64,000 nucleotides of DNA, taken from the sequence record MW822008.1; one strand, 5' to 3'. The notes beneath the pieces were generated by a model that made no database searches, was not told where the DNA came from, and was given only the letters and a program-made list of their open reading frames with translations. Positions 22,825 through 52,602 of the stretch are shown in pieces. A program made the translations under genes and the position numbers. Position 1 is the first letter of the stretch. Every line of letters begins with the position of its first letter.

Positions 22825-22935
22825 CTGTTATAAACTGTACACCTTAAGTTTTATTTTTAAAAATTTGAGTTAAGTACAGAAAAAGTTTGACTTAAGTGTT
22901 TAAGTACTATATTATTTATATCTTCCTAAACAAAA

Positions 22936-37839: not shown

Positions 37840-37847
37840 TATAAATA
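37840..37847 (+). promoter_or_regulatory. T4-type late promoter
   Basis: TATAAATA just after the terminator and upstream of the tail-protein genes. Confidence 0.7.
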
Positions 37848-37881: not shown

Positions 37882-40578
37882 ATGTCAAAGAAAATATATG
37901 GTGGCTTAGATGTCACACATAATGTGACAGTTAATGGTAAAAGAACAATTCAAGGAATAAATGAACAAGTTTTTGATTCCAACGGTAACTTGGAATTAGA
38001 TACTTATTCCAGAGATGAAGTACTAGATATAGTAAGTATGATGCCAATCTCCCATTATGGTTCACAAAACTATCTACCTGCGGGTGTTTCTGGGGATTTC
38101 AATGGTGCATCAGAAAACCAGTCACAACGTAGAAATAAAATTTTATTAGAAAACGATGGTACACTAGTACTTTTACGTAGTGGGACAAACGGTAGTGTTG
38201 AGGGATTATTTTATTCATATTTGGCTAACGCATTATCAGTTGATGACATGAGCCGTACAATTAACACTAGTCGTCAATACAAGCCTGGGTTTTTTGGTTC
38301 AAATAGAGTTGCGATTGGTTTATACAATACTGATCCAAATATTTTACTCGGTAGATATATTGATACTTCTAACAGTACTAATGGTTTGTTCATATCAATT
38401 ACCAATGGTACATTAGATGATAAATTGCATACTGGTTTTTTCGTTAACCAAGCAGATATATCACCTGAAGGTGGTATTGAATATGCTATGATGGCAGAAG
38501 ATGGTTCTATATATGTTTTTAACGTACTTAATGAAAATAACCAACTACAATTAGTTGTTGTAAAAGTTGTTTATAATATAAGCAATGGTACTTATACTGC
38601 AACTCGAATTACTGGATGGACTACTAAAACATTTTATAACACGACATATTCTGCACAAAATAATATGGTTATTACTAATCAGGTAACATCAACAAATATT
38701 GCTGATAAACCTTATGTGTATGTTCCACAAAATCTACGTGGTATTGGGATTTACATGACATCAATTGATTTATATGTTGCACAGCAGCCAGGAACGCAGA
38801 ATTTCCGCTTTAGAATGAACGGGGACGCTTGGTTTACAATGGCAACATATAATACACGTCCACAGCATAGTTACAGTTTTGTGTTCAATATGAGTACTAA
38901 ACAATGTACATTAGATGCGGGTAACGATATTGGTTCATATCAAGCACCATTAGTTATAACTAATACTGGTTCGGCATTAGTTCCTACTGGTAACGTTTTA
39001 AATAACGATCCATTGTATAACCATGCAAATGCAAGAAACATTTATAGTTCATATTTTTATTTGAATTCTGGTGAAGCTTTTTGTACTACATGTCCAAACT
39101 TAGCAGAACCATTACTTATGCAAAAAGCTAAGTTTCCTATTCAAATAGTTTATAGTATGCTGAATGTCCGTGCTGTACTTTCTACTGACTTCAAAGGTGG
39201 TATAGTTCGCCCGTCTTTTGGTTCAGCGGTTGGTTCATTTATTAATGGTGTAGAATTACTACCAGATAACAGTACTAAACAATATTCACGTGCATCAGGT
39301 AGTGGTGGATTTAGACCATCATATGCAGTTCATAAAAGTACTCCTAATTTTACATTTAAATCATTATCTTTAGGAACAATACAAGGTTATGAACCTACAG
39401 TTGAACGTGCTAATGTTGATGATAATGCAAATAATAGAATTTTTATTAGTAGTATTTCTGGGTCAACTGTCACAACCAATGGTGGTATTTTTATGGTTGG
39501 GCAACGTTATTCACAATCATTATCCTATGATAAAAACTTAAATGGCACAGGAATTATAAGCGTTACACAATCAGTACTGGACAATTTTAGAAATACTGAA
39601 TATGCCAAAGTTCTAAGTGATTGGAATTTATCAGCACAAGCATACCGTGATATGACACTATTTGTTCCACAACAAACAGACATTCCAGCTTTTGTTATGT
39701 TGAGTACAATTACTAATGATTATAGAAACTATATTAGAATTGCTGAAGTTAATGTCAATACTAGAGTTGGTAATATTACATCTATTACATTTAAGCGTTT
39801 AGTACTTGAGAATACGTATGGTGATAACTTTACACCAACTGGGAATGGTTCGATTGCATCTTCTTCTGTTGGTTTGACCATATATGATGGTGGTTCATTC
39901 TACTTCATTGGTGGTTCTGACCCATTATCACATCCAACAATAGGTAATACTGCAACTCATCAATTTAGAGCATATGTAACTAAATCAACTGCACAATTTA
40001 CAAGTTTTATAATTACTGGATCTCATGCCAGTTATGAACAAGGAAGTCAACCAGCAGCATTACCTGGTATTGGTTTTGGAATTTTTGAACCAATGGATTA
40101 CTCAAATAAAATGACATTCAAAAAATATGGAACAACGATTGCAGACTATAATAACTGGACTGCACAAGGTAGCCCAATTAACGTAGTATCCCAGGACGTT
40201 GCTCAAGGGTTTATTGTATATTTTACAGAGGAAACACCAGTTATTCTTTCAGGTAAGTCATTTTCACTACCAGTTTCAAATATTGATTTGAGAACTATTA
40301 AGTCTAATCCAGCAAATACAACATTTTATGTATATGTTAAATTGGAACAAGGATTGGCAAACTATTACATAACTACTGATGTTATTTCTGAAACAGGGAC
40401 AACTGCATATAATATTTTTTGGATAGGTACAATTCAAACTAATGCAATTCAAATCGAAACAATTAATATACAAAAACGTTCCCGTTTAGATATATTTGGT
40501 GCTTCACTTGAATCAGCAGGTTCATCGTTCCCAGTTAGCTACGGTCTACCATCACAAACAGGAACCATAAACTGGTAA
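37882..40578 (+). CDS. putative tail fibre / baseplate-associated structural protein A
   Basis: 898 aa, rich in Thr/Ser/Asn/Gly; paralog of 41194..43923; late promoter upstream. Confidence 0.65.
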   Translation: MSKKIYGGLDVTHNVTVNGKRTIQGINEQVFDSNGNLELDTYSRDEVLDIVSMMPISHYGSQNYLPAGVSGDFNGASENQSQRRNKILLENDGTLVLLRSGTNGSVEGLFYSYLANALSVDDMSRTINTSRQYKPGFFGSNRVAIGLYNTDPNILLGRYIDTSNSTNGLFISITNGTLDDKLHTGFFVNQADISPEGGIEYAMMAEDGSIYVFNVLNENNQLQLVVVKVVYNISNGTYTATRITGWTTKTFYNTTYSAQNNMVITNQVTSTNIADKPYVYVPQNLRGIGIYMTSIDLYVAQQPGTQNFRFRMNGDAWFTMATYNTRPQHSYSFVFNMSTKQCTLDAGNDIGSYQAPLVITNTGSALVPTGNVLNNDPLYNHANARNIYSSYFYLNSGEAFCTTCPNLAEPLLMQKAKFPIQIVYSMLNVRAVLSTDFKGGIVRPSFGSAVGSFINGVELLPDNSTKQYSRASGSGGFRPSYAVHKSTPNFTFKSLSLGTIQGYEPTVERANVDDNANNRIFISSISGSTVTTNGGIFMVGQRYSQSLSYDKNLNGTGIISVTQSVLDNFRNTEYAKVLSDWNLSAQAYRDMTLFVPQQTDIPAFVMLSTITNDYRNYIRIAEVNVNTRVGNITSITFKRLVLENTYGDNFTPTGNGSIASSSVGLTIYDGGSFYFIGGSDPLSHPTIGNTATHQFRAYVTKSTAQFTSFIITGSHASYEQGSQPAALPGIGFGIFEPMDYSNKMTFKKYGTTIADYNNWTAQGSPINVVSQDVAQGFIVYFTEETPVILSGKSFSLPVSNIDLRTIKSNPANTTFYVYVKLEQGLANYYITTDVISETGTTAYNIFWIGTIQTNAIQIETINIQKRSRLDIFGASLESAGSSFPVSYGLPSQTGTINW

Positions 40579-43923: not shown

Positions 43924-43927
43924 ATTT

Positions 43928-43968
43928 AAAGCTCGTCTATTGACGGGCTTTTCTTTTATGTGTATAAT
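43928..43968 (+). promoter_or_regulatory. terminator hairpin overlapping a sigma70 promoter
   Basis: AAAGCTCGTC-TATT-GACGGGCTTTT; TTGACG (43940-43945)-17 nt-TATAAT (43963-43968). Confidence 0.8.
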
Positions 43969-47232: not shown

Positions 47233-47272
47233 AGTGTAATGGTACTAAAAATGCCATTACACTCAATAAATA
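47233..47272 (+). promoter_or_regulatory. hairpin followed by late-promoter-like AATAAATA
   Basis: AGTGTAATGG...CCATTACACT stem (47233-47263); AATAAATA at 47265-47272. Confidence 0.55.
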
Positions 47273-47301
47273 CTCAATATAAATTAACACAAGGATTAAG
47301 T

Positions 47302-47929
47302 ATGGCACAACAAATTTTCACAGATATCCACACTACCGGAGTTATTAAATTTCAAAATAATTTTTCTGGTGCTACTGGTGTAGACATTAAAAATGATGGT
47401 TTTAACATTGTCAGTACTCGGATCTATTGATGGTGAAGATAGTTCTCTTAGTGATTCTGTGATTGCATCATTCGGAACTAATAAAAACAGTTCTTTTATT
47501 ATATCTGGATGGACTGGAATGACTGATTCTGAAAATAATGTTAAGATAAAAGCTAAAGCTACTAACGAGAATCATGAAACAGAATGGGTAACATTATATG
47601 ATAGTGCAAGTAATAAGTTATATAATGTATTAAGTTCTAATAATATTTTAATTAATCCACTGTCGGGCAATTCTGTTTTTAATATTAATTTATCTGATAG
47701 AAATACTACTATTTCGATTGGTGCGGCTCCTACTGAAGTTTATTCAATTACCATCCTATTAACACAACAAACAGGTTCAAACCTAGTTAATTGGGGTTCT
47801 AATGTTAAATGGTCATATAACAGACCAGTTGTTCTTTCTTATGAAATTGGTGAAAAAGATATTATTTCATTAGAAACATATGATAAAGGAGTTACATGGT
47901 ACGGTGCATTAATTAGAGCAGGAGTATGA
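47302..47929 (+). pseudogene. tail-associated protein split by a one-base frameshift near 47419
   Basis: RBS-preceded ORF MAQQIFTD... stops at 47430. Removing one base joins it to the frame ending ILLTQ.TG..VNWGSNVKW...DIISL.TYDKG.TWYG, a typical tail-protein C-terminal domain. Confidence 0.65.
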
Positions 47930-47930
47930 T

Positions 47931-50720
47931 ATGTTAAACAATAATATTGATAATATTGTACAACTTCTTTATGGGCATCACAAATTTATTGAAAGAAATA
48001 CTGGTGATACAATAGACCCAACAGTACAACATTATGTGGTGAATAATCAGGGTGTTTTGGCGAACAACCGTCATTTTATTAACTATTCTGCAATGGAAGG
48101 TCAACCAAACGGTGACGGGACAACAGAAGGTCAAAGTCTATTAATTTTAGGATACATTTATGCGTATCTGGCAACAAATGATCCAATGTTTTTAGATAAG
48201 GCAAAGTGGTACTGGGACGCATATCATCAGTACTTTTATGCTGGACGTGAATTACCAGATCCACCTACACCACTACAATGTAACTGGATAGTTAATGCCA
48301 AAGAACCTATATTGGCTAACTGGCCTTTAGCTGATGATGGCTGGCCCACACATGGTGGTTTCAAGGGAGTAGAATTTACATTTACTAATGGTCAATGTAA
48401 AATACCACATGGTGCACCATATTATGGTCAGTTCTTGGATAAAGTGACATTTGCATTCAAAGGTGCGTTAGCATGGAACCAAATAAATGCTTCAGTAAAA
48501 GCATTATTACCAGATGGTAGTGTTGATTGGGATACACCAGGTGAACAATATGATGTTGACTGGATTATCGATTTCATGGGTAGAAAAATCGACTGGGATG
48601 GTAATATTTTAGAAGAAGGTTTTGACGAATCTGAAAAAGGAACTGTTCAATTAAAGAATACAACAATTAATGGTGTATATAAATTAAATTTTGCAAATCG
48701 TCAACCAGTAGAATATGGTGGTGTGATAATTCAACGAAATGAAATGCAACACAACCGCCCTCTTCATGTTCCAATTGATTTGGAATTTGCTGATAACGCA
48801 TCAGATGCAGAATTATGGTTTAGTGATGCTTCTTATTTGTTATATAAAATAACAAAAGAAAGAAAACATTATTTGGGTTGGAAATGTTCACTACTAACGT
48901 GTTATGCTTATGGTGATATTGACTCCAGAGATAAATTTTTCAGACAAAGTACAATTGTAACCACACCATTCACTGATGGTATTTCCTATGAATATTTTTA
49001 TCCTAGTGATGCTATTGCTAAGTTTGGTAGAAATTCTCTAGGATATATTACTATCAGGCAAGACCAAAGTGCACAAAGTACTATGGAACAACAAGCTATT
49101 TGGTTCAGGGTCAATGCTGATTCTAAATTACTTGTAGACTATGGTGGTGTATGTGATGATGGTAAGCCGTTATCATTTAAACCAGTACTGGAATTGTCAA
49201 AAACAAAAAATGACCATGATGTTGTTCGTTATCGTTGTGGCTTACCGGAAAGTAAAGACCAAAATATCACACATTCATTAACACCTTTAAGTGCATTTGT
49301 TAGAGAAAAGAAAGCAGATGGTTCCCCTTATATAATTGCTGATAGTAGAATTGTTGTTCCTTATGGTGCAGCTACGTCCGAAATGATATATAGTACTGAT
49401 ATATTAGTTACACGCCGCGATACCATTAATCAGTTAGTTTGTGGTGAAGATGATGGTGCTGTTATTGGATTTTGGCTATTAGCAACAAATAAGTCTGAAG
49501 TTAAATCTTTTACCTATCGTTCATATGAAGATGATTACAATATAAGAATTGTAGATGATAATGGTTGGAGATGGTGGTGGATGATTCCTGCAACACACGG
49601 GGAATGGACTACAATCACACTAAGTTCCGATACATTACGTTTATCTGGGTATCAGCCAAATCATCCAAGTTCTGACCCAAGACCAGATGCACCAGTTTAT
49701 AGTGAACTAGAAGATATTACTATTTTACCTGATACAACCCCAGTAGATGGTGTTGCTGCAATAATTGATTGGTATTGTATTAATGACATTCCAGAATTAT
49801 ACACGGATGCTGACGGTGATGACTATACTATGACATTTTCAATAACAATTGCAGGTGAATCACCATATACTGCACAGTTAGGGGATTGTGTAATCAAGGA
49901 TTATTTGTTAAACTCATTGCATTACACACCAGGAACAATACCATTTTCTAACATCACTGACCCGTATGCGAACCAGTATTCAGGATGGCGTGGTTTACCG
50001 TATCCAGGTTATCAATATCCTGTGATATATTGTTTTAAAGACCAGCCAGTAGATAACACACGCTTAGGAAACATGTTAAGCTTTATGAAAGATTCCCAAA
50101 CATGGTTTACTCAACAATTCGGTACTGTTGGTCCGTGTGCACAAGCATATGTTTGGAACCGCTGGGATAACTTAAAATATGGTGAACCAGATACATTTAC
50201 TATGCTACATTGGGGTGATCAAGCATGGAGTGGGTATGAACCACGTGCGTTCTTTGGGGCTGCCAGAGCATGGCAAGAACTCGCAGAGAGAGGAATTGAA
50301 CCACCAGCAGATCTTGTTGAATTTTGTGAGAATTGGATTCACTTTTTAATTCAATTTCAAAAAGATAATGATGGTCGTTCACCAACAATCTTCAATAAAG
50401 ATGGCACAGTTGAAGGTCCAGATTGGGACTTTACAGGTCATATGTGTGGGTTGTGGTTAGCTGGGGCTTGTGCTGCTGGATTGGCTGGATGTAAAATAGA
50501 AGGTCTAACAACACTCGCTGATAACTTAGTTCTCGAACTTCAAAAGAATTATGTTATTGTAAATCCAGGTTCACCAATGAATGGTTCATGGAGTCCAGCA
50601 GTTAGAGAAGGTACTGATAATGGTATGTTTTTTGGTTTCTGGGCAGGTGAGATTATGCGTGGATTGGGATTATACTCAATGTACCGCTTAAACACACCAA
50701 ATCGTTTCCGTGATTTATAA
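47931..50720 (+). CDS. large glycoside hydrolase family 8-like protein, probably virion-associated
   Basis: GTTEGQSL and DNASDAELWF match the GH8 catalytic Glu and Asp regions; 929 aa, rich in Trp/Asp. Confidence 0.65.
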   Translation: MLNNNIDNIVQLLYGHHKFIERNTGDTIDPTVQHYVVNNQGVLANNRHFINYSAMEGQPNGDGTTEGQSLLILGYIYAYLATNDPMFLDKAKWYWDAYHQYFYAGRELPDPPTPLQCNWIVNAKEPILANWPLADDGWPTHGGFKGVEFTFTNGQCKIPHGAPYYGQFLDKVTFAFKGALAWNQINASVKALLPDGSVDWDTPGEQYDVDWIIDFMGRKIDWDGNILEEGFDESEKGTVQLKNTTINGVYKLNFANRQPVEYGGVIIQRNEMQHNRPLHVPIDLEFADNASDAELWFSDASYLLYKITKERKHYLGWKCSLLTCYAYGDIDSRDKFFRQSTIVTTPFTDGISYEYFYPSDAIAKFGRNSLGYITIRQDQSAQSTMEQQAIWFRVNADSKLLVDYGGVCDDGKPLSFKPVLELSKTKNDHDVVRYRCGLPESKDQNITHSLTPLSAFVREKKADGSPYIIADSRIVVPYGAATSEMIYSTDILVTRRDTINQLVCGEDDGAVIGFWLLATNKSEVKSFTYRSYEDDYNIRIVDDNGWRWWWMIPATHGEWTTITLSSDTLRLSGYQPNHPSSDPRPDAPVYSELEDITILPDTTPVDGVAAIIDWYCINDIPELYTDADGDDYTMTFSITIAGESPYTAQLGDCVIKDYLLNSLHYTPGTIPFSNITDPYANQYSGWRGLPYPGYQYPVIYCFKDQPVDNTRLGNMLSFMKDSQTWFTQQFGTVGPCAQAYVWNRWDNLKYGEPDTFTMLHWGDQAWSGYEPRAFFGAARAWQELAERGIEPPADLVEFCENWIHFLIQFQKDNDGRSPTIFNKDGTVEGPDWDFTGHMCGLWLAGACAAGLAGCKIEGLTTLADNLVLELQKNYVIVNPGSPMNGSWSPAVREGTDNGMFFGFWAGEIMRGLGLYSMYRLNTPNRFRDL

Positions 50721-50721
50721 C

Positions 50722-50750
50722 TTGACATAGAAAAAGTAATTATGTATAAT
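50722..50750 (+). promoter_or_regulatory. consensus sigma70 promoter
   Basis: TTGACA-17 nt-TATAAT. Confidence 0.88.
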
Positions 50751-50751
50751 C

Positions 50752-50782
50752 AGAGAACTTCATATGGAGTTCTCTTTTTTTT
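50752..50782 (+). terminator. rho-independent terminator of the GH8 gene
   Basis: AGAGAACTT-CATAT-GGAGTTCTCT followed by a T-run. Confidence 0.8.
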
Positions 50783-50795
50783 ATAAGGTGATAAA

Positions 50796-51215
50796 ATGTT
50801 AAATGAACGTATTAAAAATGCACTACATGTATTGAACCAAGAAGTCAATTCTATTCATAAAAGTACTGACCGTTATAAAGTAATGCATGAAATCAAACAA
50901 GAATTGGAATCTATTAATAAGGGAGAGTGGTGGTATCTTCAGCCCGAATATCAAACTCGTGAATTAAACGATGTTGAAAAAGAAATTGTCAAATTCATCA
51001 CTACTCGTTATTGTGATACATCAGAGAATGATGTATCAGCGAACTTCAATCTTACTAAATTGGAAGTCGAAGAAAAATTCCATTTTGATTGGCTTGATTG
51101 GATTGAAATGGTAATGGAACTAGAAGAAAAATTCAATGTTGAAGTTGATGAAAAGTTCGAGAATAATGAAACTAAGCTGTATGAACTAGTAGAACATATT
51201 CAAAAAATGTTGTAA
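50796..51215 (+). CDS. acyl-carrier-protein-like protein lacking the phosphopantetheine serine
   Basis: FDWLDWIEMVMELEEKFNVEV aligns with ACP [21 protein letters not shown]. Confidence 0.65.
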   Translation: MLNERIKNALHVLNQEVNSIHKSTDRYKVMHEIKQELESINKGEWWYLQPEYQTRELNDVEKEIVKFITTRYCDTSENDVSANFNLTKLEVEEKFHFDWLDWIEMVMELEEKFNVEVDEKFENNETKLYELVEHIQKML

Positions 51216-51268
51216 AACTATACAATTGTATACTCTAAATAATATCATCAACTATAGGAGATATTATT

Positions 51269-51643
51269 ATGAGTATGTTAGAAATAATTGTTTCAAAAAT
51301 TCTTATTCCATTTTGGAAACCAATTTCTTTTGTATTATTAATTGGCGGTTCAGCTTATGCTGGTTGGGAAGCTAATACTTATTACAGTGGATATCAACAA
51401 AGCATAGAGCAACAAATAGCTAAAAAAGTTGATACCGCCTTGGATAAAATGCAACAAGAAAATGCAAAAAATTACCTTGAAACTAAAAAAATCATGGAAG
51501 ATAATGCTAAAGTTATTGAAACAAAGGTTCCTTTTATTGTAGAACGTGAAGTTTATAAGAATGTATGTTTAGATGAAGATGGTGTAAAAGTACTGAATGA
51601 ACTAAAACAAAATTCTCAAGCAGCGAGGAATAAATTCAAATGA
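51269..51643 (+). CDS. putative inner-membrane spanin (Rz-like)
   Basis: N-terminal TM segment, coiled coil and YKNVCLDEDG motif, adjacent to a lipoprotein gene. Confidence 0.75.
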   Translation: MSMLEIIVSKILIPFWKPISFVLLIGGSAYAGWEANTYYSGYQQSIEQQIAKKVDTALDKMQQENAKNYLETKKIMEDNAKVIETKVPFIVEREVYKNVCLDEDGVKVLNELKQNSQAARNKFK

Positions 51644-51948
51644 AAAAATTATTAGTTCCAATGATTTCTTTTTTAATTATAAGTGGGTGTGCCGAGCAAG
51701 TAAAACTACAATCCCCCGCACCAATTAAACAAGAAATTCTGTTAGAAAGATGTGATGATGATACACCTCTACCACAAAAAATTATGATTGACAAAAATGG
51801 TTTTAAAGGTTATGATGGTGCAGAAATTCTTAAAGTACTTACTCGTTGGGATGCAGTCTACAATGAATGTGCTTTAAAACACGACGCATTGATTAAAACT
51901 ATTCGTGATTTACAAGGTAAAGATATTAAAATCAATATCAAGGAATAA
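51640..51948 (+). CDS. putative outer-membrane spanin (Rz1-like lipoprotein)
   Basis: Lipobox ISGC, Pro-rich segment, YNECALKHDAL. Confidence 0.75.
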   Translation: MKKLLVPMISFLIISGCAEQVKLQSPAPIKQEILLERCDDDTPLPQKIMIDKNGFKGYDGAEILKVLTRWDAVYNECALKHDALIKTIRDLQGKDIKINIKE

Positions 51949-51949
51949 A

Positions 51950-52561
51950 ATGAACAAATATCATGTTTACTATACGACAAAATTATCACTTCTTGAAGAA
52001 TTAAATCAACGAAGTACTAAGATGAAACGCTACACTTTAAATGGTATTACTTTTCGATATTTCCCACAAAAAGTTCTTACTTTTGTTAAGAATCCAAAAT
52101 GCGTGGCATGTGGGATTGAAGCTACTGAAGTACGCATTGAACGTTCATTATGTTCTGATCCAGTATATGGTAAACCACATTTAAATGTATATGCTGTATG
52201 TGGTCTTTATGAAGTTTTAATGACAGTTGACCATAATCATCTGGCATCTAAGGGTGGACCTGATTTAGAGTCAAACTTTAATACTATGTGCTCCAGATGT
52301 AATCAACTACGTTCGAATAAAACTGAAACAGTTGATGAGTTTCTTGAGAAAGTTAAAGGTCGTAATCTTCTCCAAGAACATATGAATAATTTCTTTAATG
52401 TACAAAAAAAGAAAAATAACATTGACAAGTCGAAACTACTAGAAGAACGTAGGTTACGTCAAGAATTATGGGAAACCGATCATCTATGGCATGTTCGAGA
52501 GTTTGGTCGTCATATGAAAGCTTTGAAAAAAGAACAGAAGAAATTGAATAAACATGATTGA
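51950..52561 (+). CDS. HNH endonuclease
   Basis: CVAC ... TVDHNH.ASKGG....N...MCSRCN. Confidence 0.8.
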   Translation: MNKYHVYYTTKLSLLEELNQRSTKMKRYTLNGITFRYFPQKVLTFVKNPKCVACGIEATEVRIERSLCSDPVYGKPHLNVYAVCGLYEVLMTVDHNHLASKGGPDLESNFNTMCSRCNQLRSNKTETVDEFLEKVKGRNLLQEHMNNFFNVQKKKNNIDKSKLLEERRLRQELWETDHLWHVREFGRHMKALKKEQKKLNKHD

Positions 52562-52572
52562 TATGATATTAT

Positions 52573-52602
52573 AGGGACTTGAGTATTCAAGTCCTTTTTT
52601 TT
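52573..52602 (+). terminator. rho-independent terminator
   Basis: AGGGACTTGA-GTAT-TCAAGTCCTT followed by a T-run. Confidence 0.85.

Follow-up and report, generated by a model that had tools for sequence, protein, structure and literature searches.

Acyl carrier proteins (ACPs) are among the most connected proteins of bacteria, and their unmodified form is known to be toxic. The serine of their D-S-L motif bears the 4'-phosphopantetheine group, and the structural roles of mitochondrial ACPs require acyl-phosphopantetheine. On ACP, the determinants for AcpS are D35, E41 and E47/E48 (bioRxiv 10.1101/2025.01.28.635281), and obligate apo-ACP, even a heterologous one (S39A of S. elongatus), inhibits the growth of E. 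coli via glycerol-3-phosphate acyltransferase, according to the part of PMC4736557 that cites Keating et al. (1995). Among phages, an ACP was reported from mass spectrometry (MS) of the virions of Erwinia phages of Eneladusvirus, and the adjacency of ACP and spanin genes in Eneladusvirus was noted by the same authors (PMC7760394). Here we analysed a stretch of 64,000 nucleotides from sequence record MW822008.1 (the window), and in it the gene for an ACP-like protein, gp510 of Escherichia phage 121Q, which carries tryptophan in place of the attachment serine. A sequence-only reading of this locus had proposed a non-acylatable decoy whose bulky Trp may imitate a loaded ACP. Our results show that gp510 belongs to a jumbo-phage family which kept the ACP fold, remained under purifying selection and lost the cofactor serine repeatedly.

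Positions 50700-51260 of the window are 100% identical to Escherichia phage 121Q (KM507819, 348.5 kb) and to phAPEC6 and BF17, all of them jumbo myoviruses of the RaK2 type that belong to Asteriusvirus. Homologues were present in all RaK2-like jumbo phages, namely Asteriusvirus (E. coli and Salmonella), Alcyoneusvirus (Klebsiella phages RaK2, K64-1 and Muenster) and Eneladusvirus (Yersinia phages fHe-Yen9-03/04), and also in metagenomes; they were full-length in all three genera, with identity dropping to ~30% between genera. GenBank lists the product as a hypothetical protein, acyl carrier protein (phAPEC6 gp313c), acpP (Sharanji gp448), carrier domain-containing protein (ph0011) or D-alanyl carrier protein 1 (fEgEco12). 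The papers on phAPEC6, RaK2, Sharanji and fEgEco12 do not discuss the gene, and in the literature searchable here we found neither a phage ACP described as lacking the serine nor any paper that comments on the missing residue or gives a function. The 121Q protein matched none of the PADLOC defence models, and a feature search of the ESM Atlas returned unnamed clusters only.

The relationship to ACP was evident from both sequence and predicted structure. A family profile built from ten members and searched for ACP matches at E≤1e-3 recovered 103 solved ACP sequences (best E 3e-10), including E. coli AcpP at 3.4e-10 (ACP residues 3-76), with the structural ACP of complex I (6gcs_Q) as the top PDB match; the two sequence blocks that had originally been aligned with ACP were both reproduced by this profile. 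With the single sequence, phmmer against all PDB chains gave nearly exclusively ACPs (best E 9e-4) and set DWL over DSL, as in the alignment of gp510 DWLDWIEMVMELEEKFNV over Plasmodium ACP DSLDLVELIMALEEKFNV. The ungapped offset to 1acp_A (query 92-133 = ACP 29-70) equates W99 with Ser36, D98 with D35, D101 with D38, E104 with E41 and E110/E111 with E47/E48, and the profile alignment places a 5-residue insertion in loop I of gp510. An AlphaFold2 (AF2) model made from 15 sequences contained a confident four-helix domain at residues 59-138, with a predicted local distance difference test score (pLDDT) of ~90. Foldseek against the PDB returned ACPs as all of the top 50 structures (TM-score by target 0.7-0.78, root mean square deviation 2.3-3 Å), and fold searches of the AFDB clusters and the ESM Atlas agreed, giving ACPs only over residues ~57-139. 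The predicted ACP fold of the C-terminal part and the tryptophan, encoded by TGG, at the DSL serine thus both stand as first described.

In spite of this resemblance, gp510 missed the curated ACP cut-offs, with no match to PF00550, 19.1 bits against a threshold of 32 for PF14573, and 24 against 70.45 for TIGR00517; two phage ACP PHROGs matched it at 1e-7 and 5e-6. Because two defining features fail, the curated score thresholds and the attachment serine, we do not count gp510 among the ACPs; it clearly belongs to phrog_18343 (E 1e-61, residues 2-139, the full length), the jumbo-phage family that joins an N-terminal helix to an ACP domain. The N-terminal extension itself had been correctly recognized, but it comprises ~58 residues (helix 4-41 plus linker) rather than the ~65 given before. 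The helix showed a hydrophobic period of 3.5 residues, attained in 0.3% of shuffles, which fits a coiled coil or a packed amphipathic helix, and searches with it in Pfam, PHROG and NCBIfam returned noise only. We rejected a LYR-like reading of its R-Y-K motif, as only Y27 is conserved and the model has a single helix rather than a three-helix bundle.

We then compared the five residues around the attachment site in 43 distinct family sequences. The most frequent motif was DTWDW (18 distinct sequences, Alcyoneusvirus), followed by DWLDW (12, the 121Q and Ecwhy_1 groups), DSLDW (7, in A4, ph0011, UE-S1 and metagenomic relatives) and DSLDE (2, Eneladusvirus), with DSWDW, DNCDW, DRCDW and DELDW found once each (DNCDW in JNE01, the rest in metagenomes). 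The attachment position was therefore S, T, W, N, R or E, with serine in 10 of the 43, and the codons there included TCA (S), ACA (T), AAC (N) and TGG (W). In the maximum-likelihood tree, the W sequences formed one clade (support 84/88) nested among Ser-bearing Asteriusvirus, the T clade was sister to a Ser-bearing metagenomic sequence, and the N/R pair and the E sequence branched apart, while the Eneladusvirus outgroup and sequence P0015 retained Ser. Given this tree placement and the Ser-bearing outgroup, serine is reconstructed as ancestral, with at least four independent losses. Tryptophan was found in 12 distinct sequences of one clade, which rejects a sequencing error or private mutation; its conservation, which the earlier reading had left to be checked, accordingly holds within that clade, under purifying selection, and does not extend to the family, where Ser is the older state. 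One refuting observation named in that reading, homologues with Ser, therefore applies in part.

Replacements as varied as W, T, N, R and E could reflect a loosened constraint on the site or, equally, selection for evading AcpS. Where 121Q has W, orthologues that match it in architecture and gene order have S, T, N, R or E, which argues against the idea that the bulky residue imitates an acyl-loaded ACP; the attachment site looks unconstrained in the alignment rather than selected for bulk. A part of the original proposal that survives is that the protein is non-acylatable at the canonical site, since W99 precludes phosphopantetheine there and, with it, acyl shuttling. What makes the locus interesting is thus no longer a tryptophan imitating acyl-ACP; it is the repeated abandonment of the cofactor site in a lineage of phage ACPs.

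Pairwise ratios of non-synonymous to synonymous substitution (dN/dS, Nei-Gojobori) were 0.20 between 121Q and Ecwhy_1 (both W; dS 0.82) and 0.30 between A4 and ph0011 (both S; dS 0.87), with 0.29 and 0.34, respectively, for the ACP domain alone. As the values were alike in the W pair and the S pair, loss of the serine did not relax selection, and the gene is under purifying selection. Mean column conservation was highest in two segments, at 0.75 for helix II (notably D98, D101, W102, E104 and E110) and at 0.67 for the N-terminal helix. Residues M1, A9, L10, E16, S23, Y27, D98, D101, W102, E110 and F113 were invariant or nearly so across the family; within the ACP domain only D98, D101 and F113 were strictly invariant, W102 and E110 were nearly so, and no other serine was conserved.

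These observations bear directly on two explanations that we consider weak. That gp510 is the remnant of a phage ACP that once worked, now in decay and without a function in the Trp clade, could be argued from the PP-binding (Pfam) scores, which fall with loss of the serine, from 39.7 bits in fHe-Yen9-03 g156, which passes, through ~20 bits in S-type Asteriusvirus, at the threshold, to no match for the W- and T-type proteins of 121Q and RaK2; however, the dN/dS values make decay very improbable, and so do the ACP-domain pLDDT of ~90, the retention of the gene across three genera, and a reading frame intact in all 43 distinct sequences save that one record, from a Salmonella phage, reads through at the C-terminus. 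That the protein is still a carrier, with cofactor or cargo on another residue or attached by a phage enzyme of different specificity, has nothing direct in its favour beyond the hydroxyl kept by S-type and T-type relatives, and is close to negligible, as W, N, R and E cannot be phosphopantetheinylated, the domain has neither a second conserved serine nor any invariant residue besides the three named above, and no carrier-dependent enzyme was seen near the gene.

Transcription of the gene was the second subject of the sequence-only reading, which had started the locus at 50722 and taken a perfect promoter there as the gene's own, suggesting early expression. The promoter is confirmed, TTGACA-17-TATAAT at 50722 being the sole 12/12 match in the window, but 50722 is the first base of the -35 hexamer, and the open reading frame (ORF) starts at 50796, preceded by a ribosome-binding site, AAGGTGA, at 50785-50791. 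Sites with at most one mismatch numbered 17 in the window against 2.4 expected (seven-fold), 16 of the 17 on the coding strand, and because near-consensus sites are both enriched and strand-biased, host-type promoters are a genuine feature of this genome. Directly downstream of the -10 hexamer lies a terminator hairpin that folds at -13 kcal/mol in full (z -4.5), whereas RNA from the predicted start at ~50757, which lacks the 5' arm, reached -3.9 kcal/mol, no better than shuffles. Late read-through from the tail-fibre gene would thereby be halted at the hairpin, and RNA started at the promoter would pass on. The promoter-hairpin unit was conserved in A4 and JNE01, with compensatory changes in the stem, and was present in ph0011 too; the UE-S1 record annotates the hairpin as a terminator.

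Across the relatives, the unit was found only together with an upstream tail-fibre module (121Q, A4 and JNE01) or its remnant (ph0011). Ecwhy_1 and RaK2 lacked the promoter. Neither it nor the tail-fibre module occurred in Ecwhy_1, fEgEco12 or a divergent metagenomic phage, where the gene began 2-10 nucleotides past an RlaP-type nucleotidyltransferase gene; the nearest strong promoter in Ecwhy_1 was a conserved TTGACG-17-TATAAT five genes upstream, ahead of the operon. In RaK2 and Muenster, the gene was part of a long operon with little space between genes and overlapped the ORF before it. Because the unit occurs only with the tail-fibre module or its remnant, the 'own promoter' is best explained, from these gene orders, as a patch that would restore transcription past an inserted late module, and not as a property of the gene, so that its presence does not mark out a dedicated early gene. 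The arrangement fits a gene that would lie in a sigma-70-driven operon in all lineages, with early or middle expression, and we infer early timing for gp510. Public RNA runs containing the locus held contigs only, one of them probably DNA, and the fragments in wastewater metatranscriptomes were too sparse for transcript ends or levels to be read.

Since loss of the serine was fixed, repeated and accompanied by continued purifying selection, the conserved function of the family is independent of the cofactor. Conservation was strongest on helix II, by which ACP is recognised, and on the N-terminal helix, and we therefore read gp510 as a binding module, a non-carrier, binding-based mode of action being likely. 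Our preferred explanation is that gp510 is a 'pseudo-ACP', permanently apo, that occupies one or more host ACP clients; taken as a whole, this reading is tentative and somewhat more apt to fail than to hold. The protein would be made from a promoter used by host RNA polymerase, with a flexible linker joining a coiled-coil-like N-terminal helix to a well-folded ACP domain devoid of the cofactor serine. Stoichiometric protein-protein binding would proceed via the conserved acidic helix II, and the N-terminal helix could serve oligomerisation or a second contact. Such a permanently apo ACP might then occupy at least one host ACP client, with AcpS and PlsB (glycerol-3-phosphate acyltransferase) as candidates, and the outcome would be a damping of host lipid metabolism.

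We favoured host clients because the acidic residues read by AcpS and other clients are kept by alignment (D98, D101, E104 and E110/E111) and because obligate apo-ACP inhibits the growth of E. coli; resting on this analogy, a host ACP client as the target is possible and, on balance, rather unlikely. We also counted for the pseudo-ACP the single tblastn locus per 121Q-type genome, with no paralogue, the absence of gp313c from the phAPEC6 virion proteins, and transcription from sigma-70-like promoters (at 50722 in 121Q and ahead of the operon in Ecwhy_1). Several points weigh against it. Identity to host ACP is just ~22-27%, so binding to host clients is not assured, and the conservation of helix II could be purely structural. 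Alcyoneusvirus members have altered some client-contact positions (E41 to D and E47 to S), although host ACP itself hardly varies. The most ACP-like members, such as fHe-Yen9-03 g156, keep the serine, and the ancestral role may have used the cofactor. Finally, the ACP in virions of Erwinia phages of Eneladusvirus hints at a phage-internal role (PMC7760394). A stronger form of the proposal would hold that the serine was lost repeatedly because escape from modification by host AcpS betters the competitive blocking of ACP clients, such as AcpS and PlsB and possibly LpxA/D, SpoT or MukB, making fixed apo-ACP decoys a new class of phage host-takeover effectors; this extension we consider distinctly unlikely. 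SpoT, MukB and the lipid A enzymes, put forward as partners in the sequence-only reading, are guesses.

About as likely as a decoy for host clients, and likewise a doubtful candidate, is a phage-internal adaptor or scaffold, in which the ACP fold would serve a phage partner as a small acidic docking module, much as mitochondrial ACP does in respiratory complex I and the ISD11 complex, with the coiled-coil helix as its tether or means of oligomerisation and without any host ACP client. Conservation of the N-terminal helix at a level like that of the ACP domain, together with its coiled-coil period, agrees with such a role, as do the fast divergence between genera (~30% identity), as in co-evolving phage complexes, the best PDB match of the profile to the complex I structural ACP, and the MS detection of ACP in Eneladusvirus virions (PMC7760394). 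However, virion MS of phAPEC6 found both upstream neighbours, gp314c and gp315c, and does not list gp313c (PMC7247149). In addition, we can name no partner, the genes between the nucleotidyltransferase gene and the ACP-like gene vary in presence, and the structural roles of mitochondrial ACP hang on an acylated cofactor that gp510 could not carry.

An involvement in lysis, in which the protein would act with the downstream spanin pair at the end of infection, for example via the lipid state of the envelope or spanin function, we consider improbable. The ACP-like gene is flanked on one side by the RlaP-type nucleotidyltransferase block; on the other side i-spanin, o-spanin and then an HNH endonuclease gene followed it in every genome compared. 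The order ACP-like gene, i-spanin, o-spanin was shared by Asteriusvirus, Alcyoneusvirus and Eneladusvirus as well as a divergent metagenomic phage, an adjacency also remarked on in PMC7760394. The whole nucleotidyltransferase-HNH-DUF7325 block is, however, collinear in these related phages, and common descent rather than selection may account for the adjacency. The unrelated phage ACP CcrRogue gp203 is not beside spanins (its next two genes are not spanins), and the context in HRDY3 was uninformative on this point. Moreover, gp510 is an acidic protein of the cytoplasm that shows neither membrane nor signal features, the spanin genes have a conserved leader of their own, and neither holin nor endolysin was seen near the gene. 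Lipoprotein acylation, for its part, uses phospholipids and not acyl-ACP as donors.

The surroundings of the gene are listed in Table 1. The tail-fibre module (121Q genes 507-509, 47239-50720) is an insertion or deletion that separates the ACP-like gene from the nucleotidyltransferase gene; 121Q, A4 and JNE01 have it, Ecwhy_1, fEgEco12 and the metagenomic contig P0016 lack it, and ph0011 retains just the last ~30 nucleotides of gene 509. The small upstream tail-fibre gene (47302-47929) is apparently split by a 1-nucleotide frameshift near the A5 run at 47389-47393, as compared with the intact 209-amino-acid A4_503. Sharanji has this split in its annotation too (gp451/gp450), which indicates that it is real or programmed and not a sequencing error. 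Downstream, a stretch of ~40 nucleotides with CTCTAAATAATATCATCAACTATAGGAG in the leader before the i-spanin gene was near-invariant across Asteriusvirus where the flanking genes had diverged, and the leader may be a promoter or a translational element; a late promoter remains a guess, as neither CTCTAAATA nor CTAAATAATAT was enriched in the window. The motif of the leader showed no enrichment elsewhere in the window.

Table 1. Features of the gp510 locus and its neighbours, in coordinates of the window (aa, amino acids)
Feature	Position	Strand	Remarks
Tail-fibre/tail protein gene, 929 aa (121Q gene 509)	47931-50720	+	phrog_2871 tail protein; in the phAPEC6 virion by MS (PMC7247149)
Sigma-70-type promoter	50722-50750	+	TTGACA (50722-27), 17 nucleotides, TATAAT (50745-50); perfect consensus
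Intrinsic-terminator hairpin and T-run	50752-50782	+	10-bp stem 50752-50775, abuts the -10 hexamer; terminator of the 929-aa tail-fibre gene
ACP-like gene (121Q gp510/gene 510, phAPEC6 gp313c, Sharanji gp448)	50796-51215	+	139 aa, pI 4.75
N-terminal long helix, aa 4-41	50805-50918	+	AF2 helix, pLDDT 58-69
Linker, aa 42-58	50919-50969	+	Low confidence (disordered) in AF2, poorly conserved; recombination breakpoint near its start
ACP four-helix domain, aa 59-139	50970-51212	+	Net charge -12; from sequence, profile, AF2 and fold searches
Helix II, the ACP recognition helix, aa 98-113	51087-51134	+	Best-conserved segment of the family
TGG codon, Trp99	51090-51092	+	Aligned with Ser36 of E. coli ACP, which bears the phosphopantetheine
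Conserved intergenic leader before the i-spanin gene	51216-51268	+	May hold a separate promoter
Rz-like i-spanin gene, N-terminal transmembrane segment	51269-51643	+	phrog_1152, E 7e-29; Muenster orthologue annotated i-spanin
o-spanin lipoprotein gene, signal peptide ending in lipobox ISGC	51640-51948	+	From translation; Muenster orthologue annotated o-spanin

Some further observations concern the gene family and the window. The gene was mosaic: over its first ~140 nucleotides, 121Q was 90.5% identical to the S-type ph0011 and 76% to the W-type Ecwhy_1, and Ecwhy_1 was 90.5% identical to A4, while the remainder of the gene grouped 121Q with Ecwhy_1, which indicates recombination close to the border between N-terminal helix and linker. 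In Salmonella phage SD-15_S21 (P0004), the ACP-like ORF runs past the stop to give a 192-amino-acid product, and other Salmonella phage records (H45 and H46) matched only partly (83-95% coverage), which suggests 3'-end insertions or deletions or assembly errors in those records. A metagenomic protein of 172 amino acids (P0019) fused a HigA/XRE-like helix-turn-helix region to an ACP domain of canonical type, which has the Ser and scores 51 bits for PP-binding; this architecture is unusual and unrelated to the phage family. An overlap of hairpin and sigma-70-like promoter recurred in the window at 43925-43968, 50722-50782 and 52544-52602, with the hairpin within the -35 hexamer and spacer at 43925 and directly adjoining the -10 hexamer at 50722 and 52544, and it looks like a recurring compact cassette that stops late read-through and restarts transcription. 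The T4-type late-promoter word TATAAATA was strongly depleted in the whole window, with 2 copies against 13.2 expected, at 22913-22920 (-) and 37840-37847 (+), one of them 35 nucleotides upstream of the 898-amino-acid ORF at 37882.

In any case, the names 'acyl carrier protein', 'acpP' and 'D-alanyl carrier protein', among those under which GenBank records this family, are misleading for most of its members. If the pseudo-ACP reading is true, gp510 would be a ready-made probe or inhibitor of the interactions between ACP and its clients, with the recognition surface kept and the cofactor site discarded, and host takeover via lipid metabolism would be a route not described before for phages; were the decoys indeed a class, jumbo phages would possess a one-protein switch over host lipid synthesis.

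Compared with known systems, gp510 resembles the bacterial type II ACP (E. coli AcpP; PF00550, TIGR00517) in its four-helix fold, its strongly acidic character and the helix II pattern D-x-L-D-x-x-E-x-x-M-x-L-E-E-x-F, and differs in the Trp at Ser36, in scores under every curated cut-off, in the loop I insertion, in the 58 residues of N-terminal helix and linker, and in being phage-encoded. Mitochondrial ACPs (ACPM/NDUFAB1 of complex I and the ISD11-NFS1 complex) offer a docking subunit that works outside fatty-acid synthesis, has an N-terminal extension and gives the top profile match, but they insert an acylated cofactor into a LYR partner, whereas gp510 has no attachment site. The Eneladusvirus ACP (fHe-Yen9-03 g156, Serratia phage BF and the Erwinia pEa_SNUABM phages) is an orthologue of equal length with the same architecture of N-terminal helix and ACP domain, and its gene likewise sits between the nucleotidyltransferase block and the two spanin genes; in contrast to gp510, to which it is 21% identical, it has a canonical LDSLDE, passes Pfam PP-binding and was reported in virions. 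Obligate apo-ACP, as cited above for E. coli and S. elongatus S39A, shares with gp510 an unmodifiable ACP fold and is the analogy behind the decoy reading. Those forms arose from true ACPs through laboratory mutation or overproduction, whereas gp510, a putative inhibitor, is far more diverged and has an extra domain, and its cofactor-free state is natural and fixed.

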